From Mytilus californianus (taxonomy: Eukaryota): 64,000 bases of DNA. The translations under genes and the position numbers were made by a program. Positions 1 through 64,000 of this stretch are shown one piece after another; the stretch's first letter is position 1, and each line of letters starts with the position of its first letter. Where the stretch lies: assembly GCF_021869535.1 (NCBI RefSeq), contig NW_026262712.1, positions 27,218,001-27,282,000 of the forward strand, written 5' to 3'. The notes under the pieces are model-generated. The model had not been told where the DNA came from, did not search any database, and saw nothing but the letters and a program-made list of their open reading frames with translations.

Positions 1-83
1 CTGAACATCTTCCTCCATGTAGAGTTTGTGGAGAAAAGGCATCAGGACTCCATTATGGCGCTAATACATGTGAACCATGTAAG
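1..83 (+). CDS. NR-A coding exon 1, 3' part only (zinc finger 1: [27 protein letters not shown])
   Basis: C-X2-C-X13-C-X2-C nuclear receptor finger; phase-0 donor aag|gtaagt at 84; near-identical to NR-B 48670-48757. Confidence 0.95.
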
Positions 84-4820: not shown

Positions 4821-4977
4821 GGTTTCTTTCGTCGCAGCATAGTCAAAATAGAAAAGAAGAAGGAAAAATACGTATGTGCTAAAGGAGATGAATCATGTAA
4901 GCTTGGAACTGGAAAACGGACAATGTGTTCCTATTGTAGATATAAAAAATGTCTAGATATAGGAATGTCACACAATG
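4821..4977 (+). CDS. NR-A exon 2 (GFFRRS...zinc finger 2...GMSHN)
   Basis: tttcag acceptor, g|gtaag donor; CAKGDESC-X9-CSYC-RYKKCL; within ORF 4782-5111. Confidence 0.95.
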
Positions 4978-5708: not shown

Positions 5709-5938
5709 CTATTAAAATTGGAAGGTATACCCACGAAAAGAGAACCAAAGATATAACAGAGGTCAGAAAGTTAAAACTAAAAGAAAATCAGACAGTTGAT
5801 ACGACATCACTTGATGTAATGGAACAGGAAGTTGATGAATTAGTGGCGCGATTGATTGTTATCCAGGAAGAATTCTGTGCCGATTTTAGAACATGTTTTC
5901 AACCAGGTGGCCTTCTTGAAAAGCATAAGTTTGTTTAT
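5709..5938 (+). CDS. NR-A exon 3 (C-terminal extension/hinge AIKIGRYTHEKRTKD...)
   Basis: tttcag acceptor, phase 1 to 0, tat|gtatgt donor; paralog of 53772-54001. Confidence 0.9.
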
Positions 5939-7287: not shown

Positions 7288-7516
7288 GAAAGATTCAAAC
7301 TAAAAACGGAAACATTTGGTAACCTTGCTGCAGTACCATGGAGTACTTACAATGAATTCCTATCTGCAACTGGAATGGAACTTGACGATAGAAAAAGTCG
7401 GATGAACATTATAGCAGCACGAATGGAACAAGCCGTTCGGAACATGGTTAATTTTGCAAGAAATATACCGGGTTTTTCTGATCTTCAGACGCCAGATCAG
7501 CTAGCTTTACTTAAAG
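7288..7516 (+). CDS. NR-A exon 4 (LBD H3-H4: MVNFARNIPGFSDLQTPDQLALLK)
   Basis: NR LBD signature F-X2-IPGF-X2-L-X3-DQ-X2-LLK; canonical splice sites, phase 0 to 1. Confidence 0.95.
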
Positions 7517-8592: not shown

Positions 8593-8823
8593 CTGGTTAC
8601 TTGGAATACTGCCTTATTGGAGGGCATACTAGAGTTAACACAACTCTCAAAGTATTTGCAGGTGCTCTTGAAGTACCAATATTCGGATTACATTTTTCTC
8701 AGATTACACATTTGGAACCAAAAGTCTTAGACCAGATTTTAGATTTTGCCACCAGTTTTCAAAAGTGTCAGTTAACAGTCGAAGAAGTTACACTTGCACG
8801 AGCGATTGTCATTACATTTAGTG
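8593..8823 (+). CDS. NR-A exon 5 (LBD H5-H8: AGYLEYCL...LTVEEVTLARAIVITFS)
   Basis: tttcag acceptor at 8591-92, g|gtatgg donor; phases join to give LLKAGYLE and FSDR. Confidence 0.93.
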
Positions 8824-10940: not shown

Positions 10941-11194
10941 ATAGATGTGTCTTACAAGAACCAGAAAAAGTTGACAAAATCCAGATGAATTTAGTCAATT
11001 GTTTACGCTGTATCGCTAAAAAGAATCATAAAAATCCTGACGAAAGAATATGGCAGATATTTGACAAATTTATGATACTTCGAAGTTTATCCGAGCATGG
11101 ACCTGAGATTTTTGCCAGAAGGTCAAAATGGGATGCTGTGAAAGACCGTCCTCTTCTACTAGAAATGATAAACCCTGAAAACCAACCAGCCTAA
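10941..11194 (+). CDS. NR-A terminal exon 6 (LBD H9-H12, AF-2 PLLLEMI, stop)
   Basis: gacag acceptor; DR-X2-L-X5-V-X2-IQ motif and AF-2-like helix; TAA at 11192-94. Confidence 0.95.
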
Positions 11195-15249: not shown

Positions 15250-15349
15250 ACAGTTTTATTTAAATAAATGCATTCTCTCAAATGTTTTTGATGTTTATAA
15301 CGTAGCATTCCAGCCCGAATATAGTGGATTACCTTAAGCTATTGCGTAG

Positions 15350-31612: not shown

Positions 31613-32070
31613 GTCAGTATGATGTCATTGTCAATTACCGTGGTAAAACTGGTCCAGAAACTCCTAAATCGAGAGTAATTGCATTTTACGCCTTCATGTC
31701 AAAATCAATCACGAGCCCGGGCGTTGGTCGCCGACTGGTATTTGATGTAATGAAAACAAACCAAGGTGGTGGATATAACAGCCATACGGGCGTTTTTACC
31801 TGTCCAAAGACTGGAACATACGTTTTCGTGTGGGTTGTAAGACTGGGTTCTGCATATCATTCTTTTGAGTTGATGATCAATAATTCCGTGTATGGATCCA
31901 CCCATCTTTATAACAATGGTACCGGAGGCAGTGTCAGTGGTACAGTTGTTGCGCATGTGTCGAAGGGCGAGAGTGTTTACGTTCGTGCGCACTCTTCCTA
32001 CAAAGGTTCGGGTGTAATAAATAGTGATACAAACGGTAGAACAGCATTTTCTGGATGGTTACTGAACTAG
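31613..32070 (+). CDS. C1q-3 exon 2, intact gC1q domain (about 182 aa total)
   Basis: tttcag acceptor; GYNSHTGVFTCPKTGTYVF; AATAAA at 32080. Confidence 0.95.
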
Positions 32071-34505
32071 TTTGATACTAATAAATGCATTCTCTCAAAA
32101 CTGTTTTAGGCTTATTACATAGTATTATCGCCAAAATATAGTGGACTACCCTCAGCTATACAGTAAAACTGCTTTTCATTTATTTTGGCAGCTCAATACA
32201 ATTAAAACGTTAAGTGTTTTATCGGACTAAAGTAAAACTTGTTTTGATTTTCTGTTAATGCAAAAATACTGCCACTTTTTTAAATTGTAAATTCATTGAA
32301 AGGTTCATTTTAATTATTCTAGACAATGCCGCATAAAAAATTAATTTCCATCTCTCATGCAAAACCAGTTGACACATTTTGTGGTTGAGGATATTTATTT
32401 CAAGCTGCTTTTGTAAAGATTATTTATTTACACTTACTGCAACCCACTTCAGATTGTTTATTTTCAAACCCAACCCACAACTTATAATGTAAATAATGCA
32501 TGGTTCTATAAAAGAGACATCTCCATCGATGAATTATAATAACAATTACAACAAATATTTTAACCATAATATTCACAACAGTTTCTTATAGCCAAGAAAA
32601 CAAGATTATTGATTATTGTTCAGCAAATATGCCATGCTCTTTAATCCTGAAAATGTTTCGGACACACCATATCTATTGTGTTATTTTCATGCTGGGTCGA
32701 TATACGTGGCTGAAAAACGATTAGTCTCCGGAGGGAATCGTGAACTCTGTAGTTATTATCTAAAAGAAATGCAAGGTTTCAAACTTCCACATGCAAAGAT
32801 GACTTTAGAGTAAATATAGATTTGAATAGGTCCCTTTTGGTTATGTAGCTCCACCAGTGTACAGGCGTTTATACATCCTTGGCTTACATATATTTAGGTT
32901 TGATAAATCTAGAAAACAGAAATTTTGCCTTGTAACAGTCGAACTACGGACACTTGCGGTGAATTGTTGCAAATCTTCAAGACACTTTTAAGTGATATTA
33001 AAAAAGGAGTTACCGTTCCTGGTGATATCGTTAACAAATCAGATCAAAATTTTTAATTTACCATATAAACAATGTTTTAGACAAATTAATACAAAACAAA
33101 ACAAACTGTCAAAGCATACACGAATCAATATTAATGTCAAGAAAAGTACAAAGAACAAAACATACGCTTCAACCCTAATTTCTATGGACAATTTCAAAGA
33201 TAATACATCAGTTTAATATGTATCATGGATACGGCGTATTCGTCATTTCTGTAAAAATGATTATCGTAAAAGAATACATTAGATATTAGGGATTTCTCAT
33301 CATACCCTTTATTAAAATGTATGAAATAAAACAAAATCTGTAAATGACATATTCAAGTTCGTAGCTTCTTACATCTTTTAACAGCAAGGCATATACAGGC
33401 GTTATATATACATTTATTTTCTCAAAATTGTTCTGTTTTTTTAATAATCTGACGATTTCAAGTACTCACTAGCCTCTCATAAATACTGTCTATTTCAAGT
33501 AAATCTTTAACGAGACTTCTTGAAACCTGTTAAAAGTGTTGTTTTCTTATCTTTTTTATTTAGCTCTGTAACCAACAGTGGTAGCTGCCTTTGCTATGTT
33601 GATTGTCTTCCTATAGAAGCAAACATATGTTGCTCCACTTTCCAAATATAACATGCCGTATTTGCTCAAGTTAGTGGTCATTTTATTGGTAGATACACAC
33701 TGTTTTCTATTGTGTTTTGCAGTTTTACGACATACTAGACCAAATGCCTAATTATAAACCGGCAAAAAAAGGGTGAGTGTATGCGCAAGTTAACGTAATT
33801 CAATTAACAGAACCACATTGTGTACATGCCTACACCTAGTTAGACTATCTGAACCATGTGTTGTTCGTTGTTGCTTTTTTGTGTACGCAAGATATTTTTA
33901 GGTTGAGTTGGTTGTAAGTTGTTGCTGTGGTCTGTTAATTGTACTTTCCTGTATGTTTGGTAAATCCCGTTTATATTCTGTTTACAGAGGATGCTTTACA
34001 GAGTTTTATGCACTTCTTTTTTGGTATTAAAACGGTTTTACAGCCGATAAAATAGGGTTACGCTTCTGCAAACTCATTGCTAGATTAAACGATGTCTTAT
34101 CTATCATACAAATCAAGAATACTACAGAATAATAATTTAAATACTGAAAGATGATAATTTGTATAACTAAATTATTGAAACAATAATCATACAACGATCA
34201 TGAAATTTAGTAAGCATGCGGAGGAAGGCGCATATATGCATCATCGATCCATTAAATACCCTTATTATTAGAGACTTGACGTATTAACATTACTGATAAC
34301 GTTAAAACCTCATTCAGTTTCATTAACTTCTAAGTAGATTCAAATAGAATGATATTTTTGTATTTGTCATCAACATCTTCTATGTGCATTTTTAAATTTT
34401 TCAATAAAGAACCAAATATAATCGACTGTTCATTTATACTATGGACATTTTTTTATAAAGTTTTCGATTTTTAAATTCAAGTTCGTTGGAGATGAAAACC
34501 AACAT

Positions 34506-37380: not shown

Positions 37381-37545
37381 GAATAGCGGGGCGACCCTGG
37401 TTATTACCACAAAACTCGGATCAAGTTTGAATTTGGCTGGCGTCACTTTTACGGTTCTTGAATTTGTTCCCTCATAACGTTATATGCTAGCGAGGGCATC
37501 ATCTGTGTCTCATGAACACATTCTCCATTTATTACTGATTGTCAG

Positions 37546-37766
37546 GTTTCAGTGGATTCACCAACCCTCCAAACTGGAATAACAAAATGGTAGACCAGCT
37601 TGACGCATCTGACTCATCAAACAATGGTTATGAGAATGAAGACTTGATTGTTTGGATAAGAACCGCTGCTTTGCCTAACTTCAGGAAGTTACATAGACGT
37701 GTATATCACTATGGTACATTTACAAATGGTCTACCGAAAGGACAAATACCATGGAGATTGATTATT
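37546..37766 (+). pseudogene. CDC50A: CDC50A/TMEM30A (P4-ATPase flippase beta subunit) internal exon, frameshifted
   Basis: GFTNPPNW...NEDLIVWIRTAALPNFRKL matches the CDC50 motif NEDFIVWMRTAALPxFRKL; exon is 221 nt, 1 nt short (ggacaa[t]ataccatggag). Confidence 0.88.
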
Positions 37767-38550
37767 GTAAGTAAACATAAATATATAAAACTTGACACTT
37801 TTTGAAATAGCCACTTTAACAAGCTGCACCAAAATCTTTTCCAACTACTAGTTAGAAGACCAATAGTCCAAAAAATTTTCTTATGTGTCTAAACAAGTAT
37901 TTTCAAATACTTACTGGGACATCGGACTAGTAACAAATGGTGCAGACTGCTTTAAGATCATAAGGACTAAGGGCAATTTAATCGTACATACCTCAAAATG
38001 AATATAATGGCATGTCTTTGGTTGAATTGTCATTGTTTATTAGGAGGTATGATAAAAATGTTTTGGTGTACACTTTTAAAAATATTACCCAACATGCAAT
38101 ATATTCTAAAACGGTGAATTGATTATTTATCATAATATAACATCATATTGTCAAATATTGGGTGACATAAGCTTAATCTTAAAAATGTCAATAGATTCTG
38201 ACATTTAACTCGACAAACTGTTACAAATATTTTTGTAAATAACTTTTGGATTAGTATTAAAGATTTTTAAATGTTCCGATTTTACAGGGTGACAACAATA
38301 TTTTAAAACTGCCTTTTCTGTCTAAAGTGACAAAACACTACATAATTGGTGTGCATCTGAAGCGCTATTCTGGAACACTCGAACCCAAAAGATTGAAAGC
38401 ATTTGATATATAAATACCTGAATAAGAAAGGAGCAATATGAAGAAAAAGGACCTAAAAAGAAATAGCAAATTCCTAAAAGATCAACTTTGCCTCAGGGAG
38501 TAAACCCAGTTGGAACTGTACATTTGCACATGTTGATTTTCTATTTTTAG

Positions 38551-38716
38551 CTTACCCAGGGACATCATTCGATGGAAAGAAGCTGTTTATCTTGTCAACA
38601 ACATCATGGTTAGGAGGGAAGAATCCGTTCCTAGGAATAGCCTACATGGTAGTTGGAAGTATCTGTATACTCCTTGGTGTCGTATTCCTAGTCATACACA
38701 TCAAATACAGCAAACA
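38551..38716 (+). pseudogene. CDC50A: CDC50A penultimate exon with second TM helix ([55 protein letters not shown])
   Basis: Conserved [13 protein letters not shown] motif; ttttag acceptor, ca|gtaaat donor. Confidence 0.9.
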
Positions 38717-38761
38717 GTAAATTAATTGTGTTTCTACAATTATGGAAAAGAAAGTTGATGC

Positions 38762-47700: not shown

Positions 47701-48340
47701 GCATTTAAAGGATAGCACATTTCGCTAGCCAAGGGTTTTGATCCAGTCCCCTCGAGGACAATGCCTGGCGACCACTGCACCAACAAAAAAATCTCATTAT
47801 CAGAATGTCATAACACATATAAACTAAGGATTTTATCCAAGGATATAATGCTAAGTTCACAACACGACATAAACATCTATGTATACACTTTTTCTATGTA
47901 TGCGAAGATCAGTTCCATCACCACAGCCATATATACACCGAAACGGTTCATGCAAACCACAAACCACGACCCATATAATGTTAATAATAAATCACTACGT
48001 AGATCACTGTATAAGTCTTTGCATTGCAGAAGTCCACTTTGGTAGAAGTATAAAAAAGCCTCCAAATGATAAATTTTACAACATATGATCAGAAATCAAT
48101 GATTCAAAGTCGGAAAGTCATGAAAAAATAATAATGTTTTGAAATTACACAAGTAAAACCATCCAAATTCCCACAAAAACATTTTGTGCGATTCACGTGA
48201 CTCTCTATTTACGTATATCATTGATGTAATTCATAACTTAAGTAGAGAATGGTGTCTAAGCGAATCTCGAGTGTTTATTTTACGAAAGTCGAAATTTGAT
48301 TATTAGATATAATTTTCAGATTGAGTGTACAGATATTATC

Positions 48341-48757
48341 ATGGATAGCCAGAATATGGATTTTTTAGATTCATCATTGCTAACTCCCGACCTAACATCT
48401 GACACAGACTTATTCTTTGGTATTGCTGACTTAGCGCTATCTGATAGCTCACCAAATCACTTATCATTTAATTCAATATGTATGTCAGTGTTAGACAAAG
48501 AGCTATCCTGTAGTTCTTCCGCAGATAGTGGTAAAGGGGAATCGGAAGATTCGGAAACAATACATAGAGGAGAATCGGAAGATTCGGAACCGGTACATGA
48601 AGAAAAATCGAAAGATTCGAAAGTGGCACAGAAACCGCCAAAGAAAAAGCATCACAAAAATCAACCGCCTGATGCTGAACATCTTCCGCCATGTAGAGTT
48701 TGTGGAGAAAAGGCATCGGGACTTCATTACGGCGCTAATACATGTGAACCATGCAAG
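48341..48757 (+). CDS. NR-B coding exon 1, copy a (A/B region + zinc finger 1); exon acceptor at 48319, exon 48320-48757
   Basis: MDSQNMDF...[22 protein letters not shown]; tttcag acceptor; aag|gtaagt donor. Confidence 0.9.
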
Positions 48758-49818
48758 GTAAGTAGATGAAACATTAACTCAATTGTATTATACAGTTTAC
48801 CATGTGGTATGGATTGCAAACTATTTTATGAGATTGGGACTACTGAAGTCTTTAACTCATTTTTTTGTGAAAAGTAGTATAACATCAGCCTCATTGTAAG
48901 AAAAACTTACTAATAGTTTATTTGAAATAAGTTTGCAGGTATTCCGAGAGGATTCACATTATATTTCAATTGAAGATCTCTGTAAAATATTTAGGGTAAA
49001 TGATGCATTTTCACATTTGTACTAAATTGACATTTACGCTTCACGAGAATTAACCATATTGTGGTTATAACTGATTCAAATCTTTCAATTACTTTTAATC
49101 ATTTGTTAAGCTAAACACTTTTGGTATCAATAGTTATTTTTATTTAAGTATTGGTTAAAGCGCCTATATATCATTTTTAACATATCAGGTTTTTCTTGAG
49201 CAGCAGCCATTTTAAAACCAGTATAAAATTGAAAAAAAAATGCCTGGCGACCACTGCACCAACAAAAAAATCTCATTATCAGAATGTCATAACACATATA
49301 AACTAAGGATTTTATCCAAGGATATAATGCTAAGTTCACAACACGACATAAACATCTATGTATACACTTTTTCTATGTATGCGAAGATCAGTTCCATCAC
49401 CACAGCCATATATACACCGAAACGGTTCATGCAAACCACAAACCACGACCCATATAATGTTAATAATAAATCACTACGTAGATCACTGTATAAGTCTTTG
49501 CATTGCAGAAGTCCACTTTGGTAGAAGTATAAAAAAGCCTCCAAATGATAAATTTTACAACATATGATCAGAAATCAATGATTCAAAGTCGGAAAGTCAT
49601 GAAAAAATAATAATGTTTTGAAATTACACAAGTAAAACCATCCAAATTCCCACAAAAACATTTTGTGCGATTCACGTGACTCTCTATTTACGTATATCAT
49701 TGATGTAATTCATAACTTAAGTAGAGAATGGTGTCTAAGCGAATCTCGAGTGTTTATTTTACGATGTCGAAATTTGATTATAAGATATAATTTTCAGATT
49801 GAGTGTACAGATATTATC

Positions 49819-50235
49819 ATGGATAGCCAGAATATGGATTTTTTGGATTCATCATTGCCAACTCCCGACCTAACATCTGACACAGACTTATTCTTTGGTA
49901 TTGCTGACTTAGCGCTATCTGATAGCTCACCAAATCACTTATCATTTAATTCAATATGTATGTCAGTGTTAGACAAAGAGCTATCCTGTAGTTCTTCCGC
50001 AGATAGTGGTAAAGGGGAATCGGAAGATTCGGAATCAATACATAGAGGAGAATCGGAAGATTCGGAACCGGTACATGAAGAAAAATCGAAAGATTTGAAA
50101 GTGGCACAGAAACCGCCAAAGAAAAAGCATCACAAAAATCAACCGCCTGATGCTGAACATCTTCCGCCATGTAGAGTTTGTGGAGAAAAGGCATCGGGAC
50201 TTCATTACGGCGCTAATACATGTGAACCATGCAAG
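49819..50235 (+). CDS. NR-B coding exon 1, copy b (exon 49798-50235)
   Basis: Near-identical tandem copy, open frame, intact splice sites; L>P, T>S and S>L relative to copy a. Confidence 0.9.
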
Positions 50236-51539
50236 GTAAGTAGATGAAACATTAACTCAATTGTATTATACAGTTTACCATGTGGTATGGATTGCAAACT
50301 ATTTTATGAGATTGGGACTACTGAAGTCTTTAACTCATTTTTTTGTGAAAAGTAGTATAACATCAGCCTCATTGTAAGAAAAACTTACTAATAGTTTATT
50401 TGAAATAAGTTTGCAGGTATTCCGAGAGGATTCACATTATATTTCAATTGAAGATCTCTGTAAAATATTTAGGGTAAATGATGCATTTTCACATTCGTAC
50501 TAAATTGACATTTACGCTTCACGAGAATTAACCATATTGTGGTTATAACTGATTCAACGCTCATATAGTCAACTACTGCACAATGTTCTGTTTGGACTCT
50601 CGATATTAATTTCCACCTTTATTTAGTTTCGCAATAATTATTTAAAGAAGAAGATGTGGTATAATTGCCAACAAGACAACTCTGCACAAGAGAACAAAAT
50701 GACACAGAAATTAACAACTATAGGTCACCGTACGTCCTTCAACAATGAGCAAACTCATATCGCATAGTCAGCTATAAAAGGTCCCGAAATGACAAATGTA
50801 AAACAATTCAAACGAAAAAAACTAACGGCCTAATTTATGTACAAAATAATGAAAAACAAATATGATACACAGAAATAAACGACAACCATGCACTGAATTA
50901 CAGGCTCGTGACCTTGTGTGGTTATTCTAAAAGAGTTCATGAATGCTAAATTAAAGTATAAACTCTGCAGACTCATTTACAAATCAAAGGACTTGTTAAA
51001 TTTGTTAGTGGTAGACCGGGAACAAACATCAATTAATTCCATCAAAAAAACTTTCATTACCTACAATTGAAATGCACTAAAGTTATGCACTCTTACAGAA
51101 CCGTTATCTATACTTTTGACGTCATGAAATGAGCTTATTCATGTATAAATGTTTTGTTGCCATTCATGTAAAAAGACCTAACATACACTATTGGAATAGT
51201 ACATTATGGATATACAGTTACTAGGCAACCATTCTCAGATTAGGCTAATGTTTGATTCCTATTGTTTTGAATATCATTTAATTCAATGATTAAAGAAAAA
51301 AATACTTTTAACACTGACATCTCACCCCTCCAAAATTTGCTCTTAGTGGTGTCTGACGAGAGATCTGACATACAGATGACCATAGTTTTATAACCAAGTT
51401 AACTCTGGGAGTCTTATGAAAAACGCGAGAAAACGTAAATATGGCTTTCAATATCTATTACTGCAACAGCACATTTCAGGAAACGGTATATGATTTTGGT
51501 GAATGTTACAGGAAAATGCAAATAAAGCTATTTTTTCAG

Positions 51540-51696
51540 GGTTTCTTTCGTCGCAGCATAGTCAAGATAGAAAAGAAAAATGAGAAATACGTTTGTGCTA
51601 AAGGAGATGAATCATGCAAACTTGGGACTGGAAAACGGACAATGTGTTCCTATTGTAGATATAAAAAATGTCTAGATGTAGGAATGTCACACGGAG
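51540..51696 (+). CDS. NR-B exon 2 (zinc finger 2)
   Basis: 157 nt as in NR-A exon 2; GFFRRSIVKIEKKNEKYVCAKGDESC...CLDVGMSHG. Confidence 0.95.
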
Positions 51697-53327
51697 GTAA
51701 GATAAATGTGCTTATATCGAATGTTTAAGTGAAGCAGGATCTACTTAATCTGCTGGAGCACATTCCGTGGGATTCGTGTTGCTCAGTCTTTAGTTTTCCA
51801 TGCTGTGTTGTGTATGCTGTTGTTTGTCTGTTTGTCGTTTATCGTTTTTTTTTGCCATGGCATTGTCAATGTGTTTTCGACTTCTGAGTTTTTCTATCCC
51901 TTTGGTATCCTTTGCCGCTCTTTTCTGATTTAGTTGAGGGCCTACTGCCTTGGTTGTTGCTATGTGACCTCAGTGATAAATTAGGTATAACAAAATATAT
52001 ATATTTGGGTTTCGTATCCTTTATTATTTCTGGCAGCATTATTCGAGCTTACGAGATGTACGATTGGTTGTACGGGATGTATAATTACATAGACACCTCC
52101 AGTCTAAATTTTGACTTTAAGGATGTAGTTAGGTGAAATTAAAAAAGCTAGAATTTAAAATTGATACTATAAGTCAGAAGAGCATTAGTAAAGGAACAAA
52201 TTAAGCTAAAAATATTGATAGGTTGAGCTCCTTCTTGCGATATTTGATTTTTTTTACATGGCGGGAAGAGGCTTACTCGGACTTTAACCTTATATTTAGC
52301 ATTGGCATTATTTGGGTCTCAAATCGTAAGAAAAAAAAACAAACTAGAATCTGCTAAAATTTTGGTAAAGACCTTTTTATGAACTATTGAAGTCTTCTGT
52401 GAAAAGAATAGTGGGTTATATGGGGCAAAATATTTTACCCTGTATCAAAGGAAAAAACCCAAGAAGTCCAAACATCTGACAAAAATTCATAAACCTATTC
52501 TTAAATCCGATGTCGCATTTTGACGTGGTATACATTTCTTACACGTATCATTTTGTTAACATATATTACCTTATAATTCTGAAAATGAACTGAACATCAT
52601 AAAGTTCCATACCAAATATAAAATCACACCTTAAAACCGAATTTGAGTAATATGTAGAAACCTCTCGGAATTTTGGGTCCGCAATGCTCGACAACCTCGC
52701 ACTTTATTGGGTCTTTTTTTTAAACTTTTTTGATTGCAGCGTCATTGATGAGTCTTTTGTAGATGAAACGTCATTATGCAGCATACCATCAACTCCCCTG
52801 TGTGGGGAAATGACAAAAGAAAACGCAAGGCTTATTTCATGACATCTACCTAACAATCTACACCTAGTAAAAAAAAATACAGATGAAAGATCATTATTTG
52901 ATTGAGACCAACATAGAAGATATTTTTGTTATTGTCTGTTTGATTTATTTACGGACGTGTGTCGAACCACGTGTTATCGACCGTCATAGAAAATACGCCA
53001 ATCATTTCATTCTAAATTCAGTTGATTGCGACTCGTTAGCGCCTGCTGGTAACCTTCATAATAGAATTAGCATCAACCATCCATCTTTTGTGTGTGAATG
53101 AGAAAGAAGGAAAAGGGAGGGGGGCTTTTTATTAAAAAAATAATGTTTTGATTGTGGAAATGTGCGATACAAAGTATAATTTTCATTTTTTTTTTCGTTT
53201 TAAAAATGTAAAGTTTGCAAAGGTTATATTCTGAAAATTAAAAAGCTCTGAAAATTGCTAGAAATCTTAGATGTATGCATATTCTAAAAATTCTTCAAAA
53301 TGTCAGAACGATTGGTCAACTTCAAAA

Positions 53328-53565
53328 GGGGCCTCGATGGCCGAGTGTTCTAAGATGTTCAACTACTGTATCACTAGCCTGACACGTGTGGCAGCCTGCG
53401 CTCGACTCCAATCTTAGGTTACATGGATTGTCAGTTTTCCTGCCGAATATCGGTGGTTCTCTCAGAGTACTCCTGCTTTCTCCACCAAGAAGACTGACCG
53501 CCACGAAATAGCCAATAGTGATGAAAGTGGCGTTAAACACCAATCAGTCGACCAATCAATCAATT
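53328..53565 (+). mobile_element. tRNA-derived SINE, same family, in NR-B intron 2
   Basis: 10-bp TSD aacttcaaaa at 53318-27 and 53566-75; (aatc)n tail. Confidence 0.85.
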
Positions 53566-53771
53566 AACTTCAAAAGACTATATGTCGGTGGATATTTTGA
53601 TTTAATGTACAATCATGTACATGATGTAGGGGTTGCGTTTCTGTTTGTCCCGAGTAAAAAACTCATACCCACAACCAACACAAAAAAGATGAATAGTCTG
53701 ACTTTTGTCTGACGTTTAACCCTGTCTGTAGTCTACATTTTATGCTATTTCTACTATCGTCTTAATTTCAG

Positions 53772-54001
53772 CTATTAAAATTGGAAGGTATACCCACGAA
53801 AAGAGAACCAAAGATATAACAGAGGTCAACAAATTAAAACTAAAAGAAAATCAGACAGTTGATACGACATCAGTTGATGTAACGGAACAGGAAGTTGATG
53901 AATTAGTGGCGCGTTTGATTGTTATCCAGGAAGAATTCTGTGCTGATTTTAGAACATGTTTTCAACCAGGTGGCCTTCTTGAAAGGCAGACGTCTATTTA
54001 T
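53772..54001 (+). CDS. NR-B exon 3 (CTE/hinge)
   Basis: 230 nt, canonical AG/GT; AIKIGRYTHEKRT...LLERQTSIY. Confidence 0.92.
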
Positions 54002-54317
54002 GTAAGTTGAGTTAAATGAGAATTATATATTTATTTAGGGGTTTATACATACTGAAAGGAGATAGGGCCAGTTTTTCCATTTCACTCAGAGGGTTAAAAT
54101 TAAAAATTGTGAAAACCTACTAGCATTTGAATATTATAAGAGTCTATATAGTATACTTTTTTTTGTTTGAATTGTTTTAACTTTTTTATGTCGTGTTTTT
54201 AATAATGTACCATAGTGTATCGATTTTGCTCATTCTTGAAGGCTATACGACGACCTAATATAGTTGCTTACAACAACGTCATTTGGTCTCTGGTGGATAG
54301 TTGTCTCACTGGCAATC

Positions 54318-54545
54318 GGGGCCTCGGTGCCCGAGTGGTCTAAGTAGTCGAACTACTGTATCACTAGCCTGCATACACTGAGGTTGTGAGTTCGAATCTA
54401 GCACGTTCGACTCCAATCAATATTCACTAGGATTGTCAGTTTTCCTACCGGGCACTCCGGCTTCCTCCACCAATAAAAACTGACCGCCAAAAAATATCAC
54501 AATAGTGCTGAAAGTGGAGTTAAACATCAATCAACCAATCAATCA
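54318..54545 (+). mobile_element. tRNA-derived SINE in NR-B intron 3
   Basis: A/B boxes and aatc tail; flanked by tca(c/t)tg(g/a)caatc duplication; orthologous to 6396-6567. Confidence 0.82.
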
Positions 54546-55401
54546 ATCATTGACAATCATATCACATCTTATTTTCAACAAACTGAACAAACTATGAACA
54601 ATTTTACCTATTCGCATGAAATCAAATATTATTCGTCAACTTTGTTTATTGTTAATTTCATTTTTGGAAAGATAATGATATCAGGATTCGGTTTGAAACC
54701 GAAAACATGATCGACAAAGCGTGAATTGCATTTTCCCCGTTTTTAAGCCTTTTACAATTAAAGCCTATGTATGAGGTCGATACGAAGATATATCAACTTG
54801 AATGAAGTAAATCGACTGATATACATAGTAATTTTTTTTTTAATTTTCAATGCTTTTCAACTTCGTCATTTATTTTGGCCGTCCAACTGTTTTGATTCTA
54901 GCGCGTGTGGCATATTAAACTTTGAAAAAAAACAAAGATGTGGCATGATTGCCAATGAGACAACTATTCATAGATCAAAAGACAAAGATGTGAACAGTTA
55001 CAGGTCACCGTACGGCCTTTAACAATGAGCAAAAACCGTACCGTATAGTCATCTATATAAGGCGCCGGTATGAAAAAAGACGTAAACGATTCAAAAGAGA
55101 AAACCGACGTCATGGAATGCTTTATACTACAACAATGAACGAAAAACAAATAGGCAGACAGCAACCTAGAACAACCACTTGATTGCAGGTTCCTGGCTTG
55201 AGACAGGCACACACACACAATGTGTTGTAGTTTAATATTGTTAAAAAGCCAGGTATCTTTGGTGAGGTTTTAGTTATACCAATATTATGAATGAAAGAAA
55301 ATACAACCAAACAATCGTAATAAATTTTCAGTCTCATTTTTAAACGCTTCAATCAGTTTGACAGTCATCAAAATGCACTGTTTGTTTTTATTTATTTCCA
55401 G

Positions 55402-55630
55402 GAAAGATTCAAAGAAAAAATTGAAACATTTGGTAATCTTGTCGCATTACCATGGAGTGTTTACAATGAATTTCTATCTACAACTGGAATGGAACTTGAC
55501 GATAGAAAAAGTCATATGAACATCATAGCAGCACGAATGGAAGAAGCCGTTCGAAACATGGTTAGTTTTGCAAGACATATACCGGGTTTTTCTGATCTTC
55601 AGACGCCAGATCAACTAGCTTTACTGAAAG
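55402..55630 (+). CDS. NR-B exon 4 (LBD H3-H4)
   Basis: 229 nt; ERFKEKIETF...FARHIPGFSDLQTPDQLALLK. Confidence 0.95.
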
Positions 55631-56570
55631 GTAACAAATGAACACATATATTTGCCCTGAAACAAAAAATACCATTCATCAAATGATCATCCAAAAATTG
55701 AAAAATACCAGAAATAGGTCAGTTCATAAAGGGATTATATTTTCAAAACAATTGATATTTTGATAGATGGTTACTAAGAATGCTTCTGTATGTTTTTGTT
55801 TTGTTGTTTTATTCCTATCGTTTTTGTCTCGTCACAGTGTGCGAGACATAGGAATTACTACCCAGAGGCGACGCGGAGTAAATATGTCTTGAAAAAAAAC
55901 CACTTAACTCTATACTATCGGTATAATATATAACTAAAAATCATAAATTGTATAAGTACCATGTAATTTGTATGAACCACTAAGGTGTAAAACAGTTACA
56001 AATGTTTTTTAATGGGGTTCCAAAAGGGATATACTGCATTTTTGGCGCCAAATATCAAGAAATAATTAATGAAGATTACTAAATGTTTGTTTTCCAACTA
56101 AATTGTTGCACGATGAAAAAATAATAACATATAAAAGACTAAATTTAAAGTTTCTTCTTTAAAACTCTAAAAGTTAAAATCAAAACTTGATCGAAATGAC
56201 TTCTAGGTCGTGTTTGTTATACTTCCTACTGCGCTATATTTCGTGAGCGATTTGACGGAGTTTGTATTCACATGATGGCCAGGAGACGCATAATTAACCT
56301 GTCAAAGAACACGCGATTATGCTTAGGCTTTTTATATTGGTTGGTTTATTACAAATGGATTAATAAGATAAAAAACATGATCAAACATGTTGCTGCTATT
56401 ATAGAAGAAATTGAAATAAAAAAAAAGACTATTTCTACTTGGTTATAATTATCTCCTATTTCATCTAAATTTAAATTACATGTTTGAAAAACAAATTTGC
56501 AAACGACATATAATCGTTGTAGAACTGATTGAAGAAATGTCCAGTAAATCTTTCGTATATTCCATTTCAG

Positions 56571-56804
56571 CTGGTTACATGGAATATTGCCTTCTTGGAG
56601 CGCATACTAGAATCAACCCAATTCTCAAAGTATTTTCAGCTGCTCGTGAAGTACCAATACTCGGAACACATTTTTCTGAAATTACACATTTATTGGAACC
56701 AAAAGTCATAGACCAGGTGTTAGATTTTGCAACCAGTATTCAGAAGTGTCGGTTAACAGTCGAAGAAGTAACACTTGCACGAGCGATTGTCATTACATTT
56801 AGTG
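56571..56804 (+). CDS. NR-B exon 5 (LBD H5-H8)
   Basis: 234 nt, one codon longer than NR-A; canonical splice sites. Confidence 0.93.
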
Positions 56805-57343
56805 GTATGAATATTACAAGATTTAATTATATATTATACCAATAGGATAAGAACACTTCGGTGTTAAATGTCCTATCTGTATCTAATACAATTTGTTATA
56901 TGACTGTGGTTATTTTTGGCAATGTTTCACGTTGTTTTTGTAACGAGTGAACCCAGTTAAGGATATTCCGGAAACTACGTGGTGTGTGCGCACATTGCTT
57001 CTGTTTTACAGTTTTACAGTTTATACAGCTGATAAATGGGAATTTACTGGCATGACTTAAATATTACATTTTAAAAGGGGATAGTCATTTTGTGAAATCT
57101 GTAGTTGATATTTTTTAATTATATTAAGATTATACGTAAGGAAACATTTCTTCGTCTATGCTAAGAAAATGTTTCAGGCCTAACACAATTCAAACGGTTT
57201 ATTTTTTAAGGAATGTGTCTGTATAAGGTGCAGTTAAGCTTCGCTCCTATTTATCAGTTCCTCGGTTAGCCATTAAAGGGACCGTTCAAACAGGGTGTAA
57301 TATAAAACAAAGTCAAAATCGGTTTATGGAAACTGCCAATTGT

Positions 57344-57808
57344 AGGTGTCAGACCACCAATTCACCCACTTCAATTTAGAACGTATGTAAAAATAGCCCT
57401 CCCCTGAAAAAAATAGTGCCTTTGATGTCATTGTTCACTTAAACTAACAAACACATTTGCAGAAACGAAACTTTGGTGAAAGAGAAATATATGTAGACCA
57501 TTTTGAGCCAAAATTTACTTGTCCATGAGTTTGCATTAACAATTGAGGATTAATGCGCTCCATAGTACACTTATTAAAGATTTCCAGAAAACCAGGGGTT
57601 ATTTTAAAAGCAATTGACTTCCGAACGGCAGTATTTACAAGATTTTAAACATTGGTTGAAAATTGGCTTTTAGAAAGGTAATACATGTACAATTCGGGAT
57701 ATACCTGGTTTCTATGAAGTTAAACTTAAAGTAAAATATTTAGAAAGGTGTGAAAATTGCTAAATTTGTTTGAATAGATAGGGATTTTAAATTGGTGGTC
57801 TGACACCT
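57344..57808. mobile_element. MITE with perfect 19-bp TIR aggtgtcagaccaccaatt in NR-B intron 5
   Basis: TIRs 57344-62 and 57790-808; absent from NR-A intron 5. Confidence 0.8.
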
Positions 57809-58447
57809 GTACTAAAACTATTGTTACGTACGACTTTCACAGGCAAAGTTGGCAATTCAATTATACAATATTGGTATTTGGAATGCTCCAAAAGTTTATA
57901 GCTTATCATATTGTTCGTTATATTGTAAAAAACAACGTTGAGCACGGTGAAATCGGATCTAAGTTTTTTATATTGCAGTACTAATCATCTCTATCTGAAC
58001 TATAAAAACATCTTTACATAATCTTACCTTTTTATATTTTATAGAGGCAAATTCTTGAAGGAACCCGCCAACAAAGCAAGATAAAGTTAATGCATTGATA
58101 TTTCTTTATTTATAATTTTGTGAATAAAAAAAAATGTCACTCCTTTTTCAAAATCAACGAACTGCTACAAACGTACAGAGATAATTGAGCACAAATGATA
58201 ACATTATTTTCATAAAATGGTCTTCGTGTTGAGAATCTTGTTAAAATCAATAAAGAAACGCCTTTTCAATAGAATAAACACAAAAATGAGGAAAGTTTTA
58301 ATCCTATTTGTCCTCAATCAAGTTAATAAAGTTAGAACATATCTTTTCAAATTCTATAAGTTTGAAAAATGTTCACAACGACCCGCCATTTTTTTTTTTC
58401 ATTTTTTTTATGAATAAATAACTGTTTTTATATTTTTGTGTTGACAG

Positions 58448-58713
58448 ATCGATGTGTCTTACAAGAACCAGAAAAAGTTGACAAAATCCAGATGAATTTA
58501 GTCAATTGTTTACGCTGCATTGCTAAAAAGAATCATAAAAATCCTGATGAAAGAATATGGCAGATATTTGACAAATTTATGATACTCCGAAGTTTATCCG
58601 AGCATGGGCCTGAGATTTATGCAAGAAGGTCAAAATGGGATGCTGTGAAAGACCGTCCTCTTCTACTAGAAATGATAAACCCTGAAAACCAACCAGCATC
58701 AAATGGGATATAA
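58448..58713 (+). CDS. NR-B terminal exon 6; the spliced CDS (one exon-1 copy) is 1533 nt, about 510 aa, NR1-like
   Basis: Exon lengths sum to an open frame; AF-2 PLLLEMI; ends ASNGI*. Confidence 0.95.
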
Positions 58714-59164
58714 TTTTTGTGGAAGATTTTTATAGAGAAAAACATTGATGCAATATTGAAGGGGTATTCGCTTATTCTACGTACTGTTCTCTGATTTCAA
58801 TTGTATTTTTGCAAATTTCAAACGGCTATTCACAAATTTATGAAACAAGCATAATTTATTATATACAAAACATTTTATTGATGTATGCATAATGTTCTAA
58901 AACATGACACGCGTAGTTTCAAACTGAAGCTATGTTTTCTGATATTTGTAGTTATTTTATTTTGAAATAGAAAGGGAAGAGAGAAAGAAATGAGATGCAT
59001 TTTTGAATTTTTTTGAAGAAATATTGGAAAAGAAAAGTCAATCTTTAGATTTCAAAGAGTTAGGAATTTTTTCTAATGGCGGACCTTGTTTCCAATTCTT
59101 TTATGTTTTTGATAAAGTGAGACAACTCATACTTAAGACAGATCGTTTTTCTTTAGATGCTTTT

Positions 59165-59505
59165 GTGCTTTTTTGTAAATAATTGTTTGTTTTGATATTG
59201 TAACACAGTGATGACTGCTGTACCCATATTTCGACTATTTTATTTATAATGTCTGTTTTGTTCACGCATCGTTGTAAATATAACGGAATTTGATGAGACT
59301 GTCGTACAAGTGAGAGGTTTAGCGCTATAAAACCAGGTTCAATCCACCATTTTCTACATTTGAAAATGCCTGTACCAAGTCAGGAATATGACAGTTGTTG
59401 TCCATTCGTTTGATGTGTTTTGTCATTTGATTTTGCCATGTGAGAAGGGACTTTCCGATTGAATTTTCCTCGGAGTTCAGTATTTTTGTGATTTTACTTT
59501 TTTTC
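59165..59505 (+). repeat. Abundant interspersed element (aaaaccaggttcaatccacc core) inserted in a T-run; inverted relative at about 26070-26540
   Basis: Absent from the paralogous NR-A 3' flank at 11590-11605. Confidence 0.7.
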
Positions 59506-60392
59506 TGTCAATGCAAACCTTATTAAAGTATTGCATTTTTATATATCTTAACTAATAAGAAGTTGCCTTTCGTAACCACCAATTTTCAATACCATGACCA
59601 TTTGTTTTCATCATAAATGTTCCTAAAAGTCACAATTATTTACCAGGTCTCACACAATACACGAGACTTGCACTACTTGTTTTGTATTACCATGGGCAAC
59701 AATTTTGTTTTACTTAGTAGTCGGTATCTTGCAGACTAAAATTAAACAAAATCAGTGACGAATCCGGGGGTGGGGTGAAGAGGGCGTACGCCTTTTAAGT
59801 CGGCAAAACAAATCTCATCTTTCTCACGATTTATATGAGTTTTTTTTATCATAAAATCGTCCATTCTTTTTATAGATTTCGTTTTCTGGAATAACACAGC
59901 CTTTCAAAAATCATGGATCCGCTCCTGAAAATGACCTTTAGATGATAAGGAAATTGTTTGCTATTGCATCAATATTAAGATGTCGAAACAGTTCATCAAA
60001 TTAAATTACGGTCTCATTTATAAGATTAATTGAAAACAGCATATTGCAGATCTTGAGAGCATTTGTAACAATCACTACGCTTTTTACAAAATAAATTTTA
60101 TTTGAAATAAGATTGTTATTCATTTACCATTTCTGTCTGTATATTATTAAGTCATTATCGTACCTGTTACCCAAAGAATAATCAGTATACATGAAATACT
60201 TAAATCCAGAACGTTTGCCAAAGGAAGACCTAAGATACACATATATGTTATACTTTGAACCAGAACCTTTTCCCTGGATCTTTGACATAGTTGAATATCT
60301 TTTAATTCGCCGTTTCAGAATCTAGTGAATTTTAGGTAATATTTTCACAAGCGTATACCAAAACGTGTTGATTCTATTACAACGTTCTTTAA

Positions 60393-60769
60393 GATGTTCG
60401 CTACTCTGTTTCAAAATAACAAGCTTTTTAAAAGACTGTAATAAATTAAAAGTATATACATAAAGGAACTTAAAAAGCAGATAAAAACTAAGGGTCCATG
60501 TGCTTGTTTTCGAGAAATAAGCCATTGAAAATATGGCGGGAAATGATTCTATCTAGATTTTTCATACATTGAACATTAGCACCTTTTTTTTTTCAAAAAC
60601 AATGAAAAAATAACAAAGATTTTGAAATATTGCTTTTTGAACTATATTTAACAATATTATGAAAAGAAAAGTAAGGGTTCGTGATCAAAATTTTTTAATG
60701 GCACTACATGTATAAAACCAGAGGATTCCGAATATCTGGCAACAATTCAAAAATAAGAGAAGCGAACAT
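60393..60769. mobile_element. Kolobok-like MITE
   Basis: TTAA|GATGTTCGCT...AGCGAACATCC|TTAA; empty site at about 12360-12372 in the paralogous block. Confidence 0.75.
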
Positions 60770-61075
60770 CCTTAACAATGGAAGTTCAACCAATGACGCA
60801 TCGTAGTTTTCATTTTGGGGTACAGACAATGAAACTATACACAATCCTTTAGATACTGAAACGGCGAATTGAATCATAGACATATACAAAATGTATACGT
60901 TATGCTTGATTTCAGAACCTTTTTCGTTGATCTGGAACCTTAGGAAAATATGTAGGGCATTATCAATAATTCCAATTTGTCAAACCTTATCAAAATGTAA
61001 GACAACAAACTAAAAACAATTAACATATCTTATTGTCAAAACTAGAAAAATAAAAATGGAAGTTCTTTTAACATA

Positions 61076-61340
61076 GGGGCCTCGGTGGCCGAGTGGTGTA
61101 AGTAGTTACTACTGTAATCACTAGCCAGTCAACACTGAGGTTGTGAGTTCGAACCCCGCTCGTGCGGGTGCACTCGACTCCAATCTTAATTGACTAGGAT
61201 TGTCAGTTTTCCTATCGAAGGTCGGAGGTTTTCTCCGGGCACTCCGGCTTCCTCCACCAATAAAAACTGGCCGCCACGAAATAGCCCAAAAGTGGTGCTT
61301 AAAAGTGGCGTTAAAACACAAAAAAATCAAAAAATCAAAT
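61076..61340 (+). mobile_element. tRNA-derived SINE, intact-looking
   Basis: A box ggtggccgagtgg, B box gttcgaacc, ctccgggcactccggcttcctcc core, aatc-type tail; 11-bp TSD cttttaacata. Confidence 0.88.
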
Positions 61341-61564
61341 CTTTTAACATAAAAAAGTGTCTCCTCCAAAACAAAATAATCATTACATCAGACAAGTTAT
61401 AAATCTTGACACAGATATGTTTGAATTTAAAAATACAAAATGGCGTTACAAAGAACAAGATGTTGGTGATGTAAAAGGTGTATTTTGTCGAAGGCACTGA
61501 CTTGAGGATGTGTTAAAAACGTTGAACGCTACAACAGATAGCAATGATTCACTAATTCACTAAT

Positions 61565-63244
61565 TATACGACCGCAAAAAAATTTTGTGGTCGTATATTG
61601 GTATGACGTTGGCGTCGTCGTCGTGGTCGTCGTGGTCGTCGTCGTCATCCGGCGTCGTCGTCGTCGTCCGAAGACACATTGGTTTTCGCACTCTAACTTT
61701 AGTTAAAGTAAATGGATCTCTTTGAAATTTTACCATAAGGTTCAATACCACAAAAGAAAGGTTGGGCTTGACTTTGGGGGTTATGGTACTAACAGTTAAG
61801 GAATTAGGGGCCAAAAGGGGCCAAAAATAAGCATTTTTGTAACTTTCAGACATAACTTATGTGTTACAGTATGGATCTCTCTGACATTGTACCACAAGGA
61901 TCCATATTACAAAGGGAATGCTGGGATTGATTTTGGGGTAATTGTCTCAAAATTATAGGAATTAGGGGCCAAAAAAGGGGAAAAACAAGCATTTTTCTAT
62001 CCATGACAATAACGTGTGTGTAAGTGTATGGATCTTTCTGAAATTGTACTACAAGGTTCCATATCACAAAGGAAAAGCTGAAATTGAGTTTAGGGGTAAT
62101 TGCACAAAAAGTTTAGGAATAAGGGGCCAAAAATGAGCATTTTTCTAGTTTCAAGACAATAACTTGTGTTCAAGTGTATGGATCTCTCTGAAATTGTACT
62201 GCAAGGTACCATACCACAAAGGGAAGGCTGGGATTGAGGTTGGGGGTGATAAATCATACGAGGGTTTTAAAAAATTAGGGGGGGGGATTTTTTTCCCTTT
62301 TTTTCCTTTTTTTTTCTTTAAAATTTTCCATTTAAATTGGTTATTTCTGATTTATATATAAAAGCAAATAATAATGATATGGTTTGTATAGGTAAATTAA
62401 AAAAAAATAAGTTCTTAGACCACATTCATTTTGTGTCAGAAACCTATGCTGTGTCAAATATTTAAGCACAATCCAAATTCAGTGCTGTATCGAGCTTCCG
62501 TTTTTATTCTGTAGTTAGTCCCACTTTGGTTTTATCAAGTATATCTATGATATAGTCATTTTATAAAATTTACTGTTTTGCAAAATTATAAGTTATTATG
62601 GTTATAAGGATGTTCTTGTCCCAGGCAGAAAATCCTGGCCGTGTTAGGCGCAACTTTTTGGAAGTTTTGGTCCTCGGTGCTTTTCAGCCTTGTACTTGTT
62701 TTGGCTTTCAAACTTTTTTCATCTGAGCTTCACTGGTTGGTCTTGTGTGGACGAGACGCACGTCTGGCGTATTGAATTTTAAGCCTAAGCTATTATTCGT
62801 GTGTTTCTTTGTCCTATATGTTCTCCCATTTATTTGTATTGTGGTCCTGTCATGTGATGTTGTCGTTTTGGTGTTGTGTTTGACGTTGCCATAAAAGCAG
62901 GAGGTTTGGCATGCCACAAAACCAGGTTCAACCCACCATTTTTTTTTTCTTAAAATGTCTTGTACAAAGTCAGGAAAATGGCCATTGTTATATTATAGTT
63001 CGTTTCTGTGTGTGTTACATTTTAATGTTGTGTTTTTGTTGTGTCGTTGTTCTCCTCTTATATTTGATGCGTTTCCCTCAGTTTTGGTTTGTAACCCGGA
63101 TTTGTTTTTATCTCTATCGATTTATGAGTTTTCGAACAGCGGTATACTACTGTTGCCTTTATTGAATGTTGTGTCCATACTTGCCCCAACTGTTCAGGGT
63201 TCGACCTCTGCGGTCGTATAAAGCTGCGCCCAGAGGAGCATTTT
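61565..63244 (+). mobile_element. Helentron/HINE-like element (tatacgaccgca subTIRs, (gtc)n, about 150-158-bp tandem repeats) with nested repeats at about 62530-63170
   Basis: 5' tatacgaccgc and 3' gcggtcgtata plus terminal stem-loop; absent from paralogous C1q promoters. Confidence 0.7.
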
Positions 63245-63813
63245 ATTCACTAATGCAGCCGATTTTACTTCAGGCAGTAATAACATTGATTAAAGGGTCT
63301 CATTTGGTTTTGCAAAAGTAATGAATGTGTAACCGCTTCCATACTTTGAAAGTTTCTATAGGTAACAAGAGGTAACGTCTAGTTTAGCAAGAGGAATGAA
63401 TTATCAGCCACTAAACTCTTTGAAAGTACCCATGAGAAGTCTTTTTCAAGCGAAAAGTTTCCAAGAATGTCCTTATTATTCAGTGACAGTTAATGTCCTT
63501 TGGTCTTTGGAAGATAGTGGTCTCATTGGAAATCATACCTCACGACCATTCTTTAACAAATGTAAATACATTATAGGTATACTTTTAATTTGTGCCCCTT
63601 GAATTTAATTAATTGTTGACAGTTTCAATTCCATTGACAAATTCTACCAGAATAGTCGGGGACACAACATGTTTATAACATGTACAATCGCGGTTTGTGT
63701 TAAACCATGTCTGAAATCTATATTTCAACTTTTTAGGGCATCAAATTTCATAGCATCAACACGCAAAAGTAACATTATAGTTTTGAATATCATACATAAA
63801 TTTTTCAGTCGTT

Positions 63814-63907
63814 ATGTCTCTAACAAGCATTTTGATTTCTTGGATTGTGGTCTTTTATATGGTGAACTTTGCAAGTGCGACGACGAGTTCTTGTCGAACA
63901 GCAGACG
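63814..63907 (+). CDS. C1q-4 exon 1, signal peptide (gene continues beyond window)
   Basis: MSLTSILISWIVVFYMVNFASATTSSCRTAD, g|gtaagt donor. Confidence 0.85.
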
Positions 63908-64000
63908 GTAAGTAGTTAAAGTCTAGATGATTAAAAACAATACTAATTCAAAACAGAAACCACTCAGAATATGCTAAGACGGACATCACGAAATAAATCG

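Follow-up and report, generated by a model that had tools for sequence, protein, structure and literature searches.

The window, meaning the whole stretch of 64,000 nucleotides of Mytilus californianus DNA that was analysed, has the base composition of AT-rich animal DNA and harbors two nuclear-receptor genes, NR-A and NR-B, which are intact, expressed tandem paralogs of six exons each on the + strand, spaced about 48 kb apart (Table 1). All of their introns are of the GT-AG type, and both reading frames are open. Comparison of the window with itself reveals a collinear segmental duplication, in which positions about 90-13,500 pair with 48,700-64,000 at 72-90% identity, introns included. The coding sequence of NR-B with the proximal copy of exon 1 translates exactly into XP_052065224 (P0143); the model with the distal copy corresponds to XP_052065223 (P0030) and the in-window part of NR-A to XP_052065230 (P0144, 530 aa), both compared by eye. 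The stretch 56571-56804, on which a first-pass annotation had focused, is exactly exon 5 of NR-B, and its counterpart in NR-A lies at 8593-8823.

Table 1. Features of the two receptor genes and their surroundings (window positions; H, helix)
Feature	Position	Strand	Remark
NR-A exon 1, 3′ end only (zinc finger 1)	3..83	+	Gene start precedes the window; full protein XP_052065230
NR-A exon 2 (zinc finger 2, start of T-box)	4821..4977	+	NR-B equivalent matches Pfam zf-C4
NR-A exon 3 (hinge, H1)	5709..5938	+	NR-A-specific letters present in RNA reads
NR-A exon 4 (H2-H4)	7288..7516	+	Gene model
NR-A exon 5 (C-terminal half of H5, beta hairpin, H6, H7, H8)	8593..8823	+	Fast-evolving copy
NR-A exon 6 (H9-H12/AF-2, stop codon)	10941..11194	+	Gene model
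CDC50A-like fragment, two exons	37542..38717	+	94% identical to XP_052065237; upstream of NR-B
NR-B exon 1, distal copy (A/B domain and zinc finger 1)	48341..48757	+	RefSeq isoform X2
NR-B exon 1, proximal copy (A/B domain and zinc finger 1)	49819..50235	+	Isoform X3
NR-B exon 2 (zinc finger 2)	51540..51696	+	Gene model, Pfam zf-C4
NR-B exon 3 (hinge, H1)	53772..54001	+	RNA junction 54001>55402
NR-B exon 4 (H2-H4)	55402..55630	+	Pfam Hormone_recep match, RNA junctions
NR-B exon 5 (C-terminal half of H5 to H8)	56571..56804	+	RNA junctions on both sides; AlphaFold residues 131-208
NR-B exon 6 (H9-H12/AF-2; four-residue tail in the reference genome)	58448..58713	+	RNA junction 56804>58448

About 10 kb 5′ of NR-B, the two CDC50A-like exons (37542-37742 and 38550-38717, + strand) match residues 219-349 of XP_052065237, and a gene model of M. 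coruscus (P0029) joins exons resembling a third paralog, NR-C, and a CDC50 piece to NR-B in one fused gene. This remnant and the M. coruscus fusion suggest that the duplicated block originally took in neighbouring genes. Between NR-A and NR-B, three segments (13000-16400, 19280-21900 and 27450-33200) are similar to one another at 66-80% identity; they may represent a C1q gene array, because NR-A of M. edulis and of M. galloprovincialis is closely followed by genes with C1q domains. A tandem repeat of 1.3 kb at 47760-50557, whose units are 99.4% identical, doubles exon 1 of NR-B with its A/B domain and zinc finger 1, and may reflect either a recent duplication or an assembly artefact. RefSeq isoform X1 (P0142, 656 aa) has both copies spliced in frame, and X2 and X3 have one each. 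Immediately after the exon-1 donor of NR-A, positions 84-175 hold a degenerate second copy of the last ~75 bases of that exon, in which the first zinc-finger Cys is replaced by Phe and which carries a GTAAGT of its own; this copy could conceivably act as a decoy or an alternative donor.

Transcription was assessed with raw stranded RNA reads and RNA contigs of M. californianus. Reads from this same species join NR-B exons 3 and 4 (54001>55402, nine reads), 4 and 5 (55630>56571, 11 reads) and 5 and 6 (56804>58448, 15 reads), and thereby confirm these boundaries to the base. One contig of 909 nt runs through exons 3, 4 and 5 into exon 6 and begins with 76 letters upstream of exon 3, presumably derived from exon 2. 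No junction from exon 4 to exon 6, which would indicate skipping of exon 5, occurs among the NR-B RNA reads. About half of the reads over exon 3 depart from the NR-B reference, and 13 of the 15 exonic letters at which reads do so are the NR-A base at the homologous position; NR-A is therefore transcribed at a level similar to NR-B. At position 58700 in exon 6, the codon that follows ...QPA is TCA (Ser) in the reference and opens a tail of four residues (SNGI), whereas all eight RNA reads of run X21 and one X9 contig have the stop codon TAA there while keeping the neighbouring NR-B-specific letters. Because NR-B of M. coruscus also stops at this codon, the C-terminal tail does not separate the paralogs as a fixed difference but is polymorphic or peculiar to the reference genome. 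At 54213-55067 within NR-B intron 3 and at 57462-57803 within intron 5, RNA contig depth reaches hundreds to thousands, with many loose ends and joins on the opposite strand, which probably reflects transcribed interspersed repeats. The stretches 53327-53575, 54315-54546 and 61073-61355 are copies of one another.

The DNA-binding domain of NR-B is recognized by Pfam zf-C4 in exon 1 (E=9e-8) and exon 2 (E=5e-12), PF00105 being also precomputed on P0030, and the ligand-binding domain (LBD) by Hormone_recep (PF00104) in exon 4; scanned singly, exons 5 and 6 gave no Hormone_recep match, an outcome that is uninformative for those exons. A search with exon 6 against 1.8 billion representative proteins yields only 28 relatives at E<=0.001, and the family is therefore narrow. 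In a quick LG+G4 tree with SH-aLRT support, built from 32 protein sequences in which MgNR1G represents the NR1P group, NR-A and NR-B group with the older paralog NR-C (XP_052065233/235). The clade of these three with P0034 and P0039 is sister to MgNR1G (SH-aLRT 98), and the family falls outside the E75/Rev-erb/HR3/E78 and ROR clades. Two relatives from Magallana gigas lie inside the wider clade. MgNR1G (ABU89802.2, identical to P0204) belongs to the 90% cluster of P0041, and its M. californianus ortholog is XP_052065231, whose accession lies between those of NR-A and NR-C and so suggests membership of the same gene cluster. MgNR1G (ABU89802) is the mussel member of the mollusc group NR1P, which comprises eleven CgNR1P receptors in oyster, five of them encoded in tandem with the consecutive accessions EKC19740, EKC19742, EKC19743, EKC19744 and EKC19745 (Vogeler et al., 2014; PMC4070562). 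NR-A and NR-B resemble this group in being of NR1 type with weak, non-specific similarity to NR1C-NR1F members, and in their tandem arrangement, which is typical of it. On these sequence relationships they are filed here as putative NR1P-type mollusc orphan receptors, a membership that runs through MgNR1G alone. To our knowledge, neither a ligand nor a function has been established for an NR1P member.

RefSeq calls the two proteins 'NR1D1-like' and 'NR1D2-like'. These names, like 'LXR-alpha-like', are automatic and are not evidence of orthology. Rev-erb receptors lack an AF-2 helix; NR-A and NR-B differ from Rev-erb/NR1D in possessing H12 with the motif PLLLEMI, and since the tree also places them away from E75 and NR1D2-like proteins, orthology to Rev-erb/NR1D is not supported. 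By sequence, the nearest solved structures are ROR-beta (1e-16) and Rev-erb-beta (4e-16), followed by ROR-alpha, LXR, VDR and RAR (about 1e-16 to 1e-14). NR-A and NR-B have the canonical helix order of the ROR, Rev-erb, E75, RAR, LXR and VDR LBDs together with an AF-2 helix, but their family shares only about 20-25% identity with the LBDs of ROR, Rev-erb, RAR, LXR and VDR. Most NR1 receptors have the P-box CEGCKG. The majority form in the wider family is CEACKG, whereas NR-A, NR-B and NR-C have CEPCKG, which is encoded in zinc finger 1 at 63-83 for NR-A and 50215-50235 for NR-B; receptors with this box may prefer an unusual DNA half-site.

Substitutions between NR-A and NR-B were counted exon by exon by the Nei-Gojobori method (Table 2). 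The counts agree with those made by hand in the first-pass annotation for replacements in exons 2, 4 and 5 and for both kinds of change in exon 6; the "about 4-5" synonymous changes given there for exon 5 were too few. Its central claim, that divergence is concentrated in the core of the LBD, is borne out, since exon 5 exceeds the rest in residues changed (Fisher p=0.0008) and a likelihood-ratio test on six sequences favours exon-specific omega (p=0.0003). The ratio of nonsynonymous to synonymous changes in exon 5 also differs from that in exon 6 (p=0.0015) and in all other exons together (p=0.03).

Table 2. Divergence between NR-A and NR-B by exon
Exon	Residues changed	Nonsynonymous/synonymous changes	dN/dS
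1 (zinc-finger-1 part)	0/27	0/5	0
2	3/52	4.7/7.3	0.14
3	8/77	9/3	0.80 (on only 3 synonymous changes)
4	10/76	13/8	0.42
5	16/77 and one codon indel	17.5/6.5	0.80
6	1/84	1/8	0.03

With exon-specific synonymous rates, omega of exon 5 is 0.56 under F3x4, 0.78 under equal frequencies and 0.46 under F61. Under all three, the other exons have lower values, so exon-5 dN/dS does stand above the background, and the corresponding tests of omega=1 give p=0.07, 0.41 and 0.02. A single synonymous rate for all exons yields an exon-5 omega of 0.35 with omega=1 rejected; this model was dropped, because synonymous rates differ two- to three-fold between exons. The dN of exon 5 (0.106) is below its dS (0.132) and also below the divergence of introns between the two copies (0.11-0.23, about 0.15), which was taken from chains of collinear BLAST matches, global MAFFT alignment of 200-base exon flanks being unreliable because of indels.

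To place these changes in time, coding sequences rebuilt exon by exon from genomic loci were used for NR-A of M. coruscus, M. edulis and M. galloprovincialis, for NR-B of M. coruscus, which is buried in the fused gene model, and for NR-C of three species, with the longer isoform P0159 taken in place of P0157. The NR-A reading frame and all of its splice sites are intact in four species. Introns group by orthology, at distances of 0.07-0.12 between NR-A of M. californianus and M. coruscus, 0.05-0.15 between NR-B of the same two species and 0.13-0.17 between NR-A of M. californianus and M. galloprovincialis. Codon data favour a topology with the duplication before the split of the edulis complex by 8.4 lnL, and the protein tree agrees (SH-aLRT 97). 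These data show that the duplication predates the separation of M. californianus, M. coruscus and the M. edulis complex. The annotations of M. edulis and M. galloprovincialis contain no NR-B, and the tree predicts a loss of the gene in the edulis complex.

Divergence after the duplication is asymmetric: NR-A has changed and NR-B has stayed near the ancestral state. Ancestral reconstruction of exon 5 assigns 7.5 nonsynonymous and 1.5 synonymous changes to the NR-A stem, 7 and 2 to the NR-A branch of M. californianus, 4 and 2 to that of M. coruscus and 11 and 2 to the NR-A stem of the edulis complex (M. galloprovincialis and M. edulis), as against 1 and 0 for the NR-B stem, 2 and 3 for NR-B of M. 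californianus and 6 and 5 for NR-B of M. coruscus. About 14.5 of the 17.5 exon-5 replacements between the two copies in the window thus originated in the NR-A lineage, and states that the outgroup marks as ancestral, such as the Pro after H5 and the undeleted codon, are kept by NR-B. The NR-A stem also bears 8 nonsynonymous and 3 synonymous changes in exon 4. By lineage, omega of exon 5 is 0.78 for NR-A, 0.33 for NR-B and 0.066 for NR-C; equality of all three is rejected (p=1e-4), as is that of NR-B and NR-C (p=0.011), while neither omega=1 for NR-A (p=0.58) nor equality of NR-A and NR-B (p=0.18) is rejected. The values for NR-A, NR-B and NR-C, in this order, are 0.06, 0.03 and 0.04 in the DNA-binding domain, 0.38, 0.11 and 0.07 in exon 3, 0.18, 0.14 and 0.01 in exon 4, and 0.38, 0.11 and 0.14 in exon 6. 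Those of exons 3, 4 and 6 were obtained in two independent fits, those of the DNA-binding domain in one. Only in exon 5 is NR-A indistinguishable from neutrality, omega=1 being rejected for its exons 3, 4 and 6 and its DNA-binding domain. Because NR-A orthologs also diverge fast from one another in exon 5 (dN/dS 0.97 between M. californianus and M. coruscus, about 0.7 between NR-A and its M. galloprovincialis ortholog), the high rate has persisted in NR-A and was not confined to the time of the duplication. Exon 6 is conserved in NR-B as well as in NR-A of M. californianus, and has accumulated numerous replacements in M. coruscus and edulis-complex NR-A, where the AF-2 motif PLLLEMI is nevertheless unchanged. 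The conservation of DNA binding and of AF-2 proposed from the sequence of the two copies thus holds, with omega of 0.03-0.06 in the DNA-binding domain and an identical AF-2 motif in both.

The AlphaFold model of the NR-B LBD (pLDDT 91.4, pTM 0.89) has the canonical NR1 fold with helices H1-H12, and the top 50 Foldseek matches are all nuclear-receptor LBDs; the best of them, to LXR, VDR, ROR-gamma and RAR, reach TM-scores of up to 0.78. Residues 131-208 of this model, which exon 5 encodes, make up the C-terminal half of H5, the beta hairpin, H6, H7 and H8, in accordance with the H5-H8 assignment of the first-pass annotation. The differences, written from NR-B to NR-A, fall in H5 (M134L, L139I, A141G) and just after it (I145V), in the following loop (P147T, I148T), in the first strand (S153A), the turn (A154G, R156L, L161F) and the second strand (T163L) of the hairpin, in H6 (E167Q) and at its end (deletion of L171 or L172), in H7 (I177L, V180I, I187F) and in the H7-H8 loop (R191Q); H8 has none. 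S153A, V180I and the codon deletion, which arose on the NR-A stem, are kept in all four NR-A orthologs. In an alignment of 86 family sequences, at least 75% of distant relatives have a hydrophobic residue at nine of the 17 sites, and the changes are therefore not surface noise.

Pocket positions were mapped through a HMMER alignment to ROR-beta, with the ROR-gamma register confirmed by eleven residue identities and the ROR-gamma contact residues taken from the literature (PMC8080595, PMC10145393). Differing sites occupy seven of the 16 pocket-equivalent positions in exon 5 and ten of the other 62 (p=0.036), a comparison by sequence alignment only, which is gapped in the hairpin. The seven, M134, A141, S153, R156, L171, I177 and V180, all arose in NR-A, and the serine lost at position 153 aligns with ROR-gamma Phe377 in the first beta strand. 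The five H3 pocket-equivalent positions, encoded in exon 4, are the same in both copies. The idea that the divergence lines the ligand pocket is tentatively supported for H5, the beta hairpin, H6 and H7, but not for H3, which the exon-4 changes avoid; scattering over the surface, which would have spoken against it, is not what is found. Adaptive retuning would enrich changes at pocket positions, and so would a released constraint on ligand binding.

The first of these, an adaptive diversification in which the NR-A pocket was remodelled by positive selection and NR-A and NR-B came to respond to different ligands in the manner of xenobiotic sensors, had been raised as a possibility in the first-pass annotation and is judged unlikely, although it has more in its favour than the other alternatives considered below. 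The seven pocket-equivalent changes on the NR-A side, the excess of replacements on the NR-A stem in exons 5 and 4, and the persistence of both genes as intact and expressed loci in several species are all compatible with it. A branch-site test with the NR-A stem as foreground adds a nominal signal (2dlnL 4.5, p about 0.02-0.03 uncorrected, three foreground sets having been tried). The sites that carry this signal, however, though retained by every NR-A ortholog, are for the most part encoded in exon 4 ahead of H3 and outside the H3 pocket positions, and the best of them is a two-base change (GTT to ACT). Branch-site tests are known to yield false positives at codons altered by two-base changes. 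With NR-A of M. californianus alone as foreground, 2dlnL is 3.7, driven by one two-base site in exon 2, and with all NR-A branches it falls to 0.14; the branch-site signals are suggestive at most. Site models detect no positively selected class (M1a versus M2a, 2dlnL=0.2, p=0.90), the six NR-A and NR-B sequences available giving low power, and M1a assigns an omega of 0.07 to 80% of sites and of 1 to the other 20%. Omega of exon 5 does not exceed 0.8 between the copies, under the codon models and in the NR-A lineage, and never exceeds 1, and its dN lies below intron divergence. The fast rate persists on the terminal branches of all NR-A orthologs, as the ratio of 0.97 between NR-A of M. californianus and M. 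coruscus illustrates and as relaxed constraint predicts, an outcome that the first-pass annotation had itself named as one that would refute its reading, and the replacements are mostly conservative. Per-exon ratios and site and branch models with orthologs thus fail to bear out positive selection on exon 5.

The reading that we prefer, at a probability of roughly 65%, is an asymmetric divergence after an old tandem duplication, in which NR-B has been conservative and the exon-5 region of NR-A has evolved near the neutral rate. A segmental duplication of about 14 kb or more would have given rise to NR-A and NR-B, copying part of the neighbouring CDC50A as well, before the Mytilus species compared here diverged. 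Strong purifying selection has been maintained on the DNA-binding domain of both copies, with the AF-2 motif left unchanged, and NR-B has retained a near-ancestral ligand domain. In NR-A the constraint on the lower half of the LBD, which exon 5 encodes from the end of H5 through the beta hairpin to H6 and H7, would have been largely released; in all species compared, this region of NR-A evolves at nearly the neutral rate. The NR-A replacements would consist mostly of conservative swaps at buried, pocket-equivalent positions plus the one-codon deletion at the end of H6, and they probably change the shape of the pocket or the dependence on ligand while leaving the fold unbroken. The cause would be relaxed constraint or a mild retuning of ligand binding rather than adaptation. 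Three points call for caution here: the pocket enrichment and the NR-A-stem changes kept in four orthologs also fit a functional shift, an omega near 1 over the whole exon can hide a mixture of constrained and positively selected sites, and the difference between omega of NR-A and NR-B in exon 5 is by itself not significant.

A release of constraint might also mean that NR-A has lost its LBD function and is becoming a pseudogene. Such a decay could account for an exon-5 omega indistinguishable from 1, for the raised omega of exons 6 and 3 in NR-A of other species and for the degenerate partial copy of the end of exon 1 next to its donor, but it is very improbable, since the frame and every splice site have remained intact in four species since before their divergence, transcription is at a level similar to that of NR-B, the DNA-binding domain has an omega of only 0.06, neutrality is rejected for exons 3, 4 and 6, and H8 and the AF-2 motif are unchanged. 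Least probable of all is uneven gene conversion that homogenised exons 2, 3 and 6 between the copies and let exons 4 and 5 escape: although exon 3 has a low dS (0.064), NR-A of M. californianus shares three residues with NR-B (alignment columns 48, 153 and 156) that other NR-A orthologs lack, and its exon 6 differs from the NR-B of its own species at 9 positions and from NR-A of M. coruscus at 17, the last pattern is explained by many replacements specific to M. coruscus NR-A, the 8 synonymous changes against 1 replacement in exon 6 are a mark of purifying selection rather than of recent conversion, NR-A of M. coruscus and of M. californianus are about equally distant from M. californianus NR-B in exon 3 (13 versus 12 differences) and intron 3 (0.112 versus 0.113), and introns group by orthology throughout, so that conversion is rejected as the cause of the exon pattern on these exon and intron distances and on branch reconstruction.

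Asymmetric divergence with relaxed constraint on the LBD is the usual fate of nuclear-receptor duplicates. NR-A and NR-B, on the preferred reading of an asymmetric divergence, are thus a new and well-resolved example of a common pattern in a poorly known group, and not a new kind of system. PXR/CAR (NR1I) and the bivalve NR1J1 (PMC13467592) similarly show lineage-specific duplication with greater divergence in the LBD than in the DNA-binding domain, and belong to a different NR1 group from NR-A and NR-B. Xenobiotic sensors have fast-evolving pockets, a feature that the mussel pair has in exon 5 without a detected class of positively selected sites. That NR-A acquired a remodelled pocket after the duplication and now responds to a different small molecule from NR-B is unlikely; the remodelling would include the lost Ser153, the codon deletion at the end of H6 and the swaps in H5 and H7. 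If it were true, mussels of the californianus/coruscus lineage would possess a pair of receptors acting as sensors. NR1P is a large, mollusc-specific orphan group of relevance to endocrine disruption and xenobiotic sensing in bivalves, and the pair constitutes a natural experiment within it, with the same DNA-binding domain and AF-2 helix, 17 defined changes in H5, the beta hairpin, H6 and H7 and one copy near the ancestral state, as well as a compact target for ligand screens and residue-swap tests.

At the three alignment columns mentioned above (window positions about 4893 and 5886-5897), NR-A of M. californianus has the NR-B residues Glu, Thr and Gln in place of the Gly, Lys and Glu that occur in NR-A of the other three species; the residues common to M. 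californianus NR-A and NR-B could stem from homoplasy, lineage sorting or a short conversion tract.
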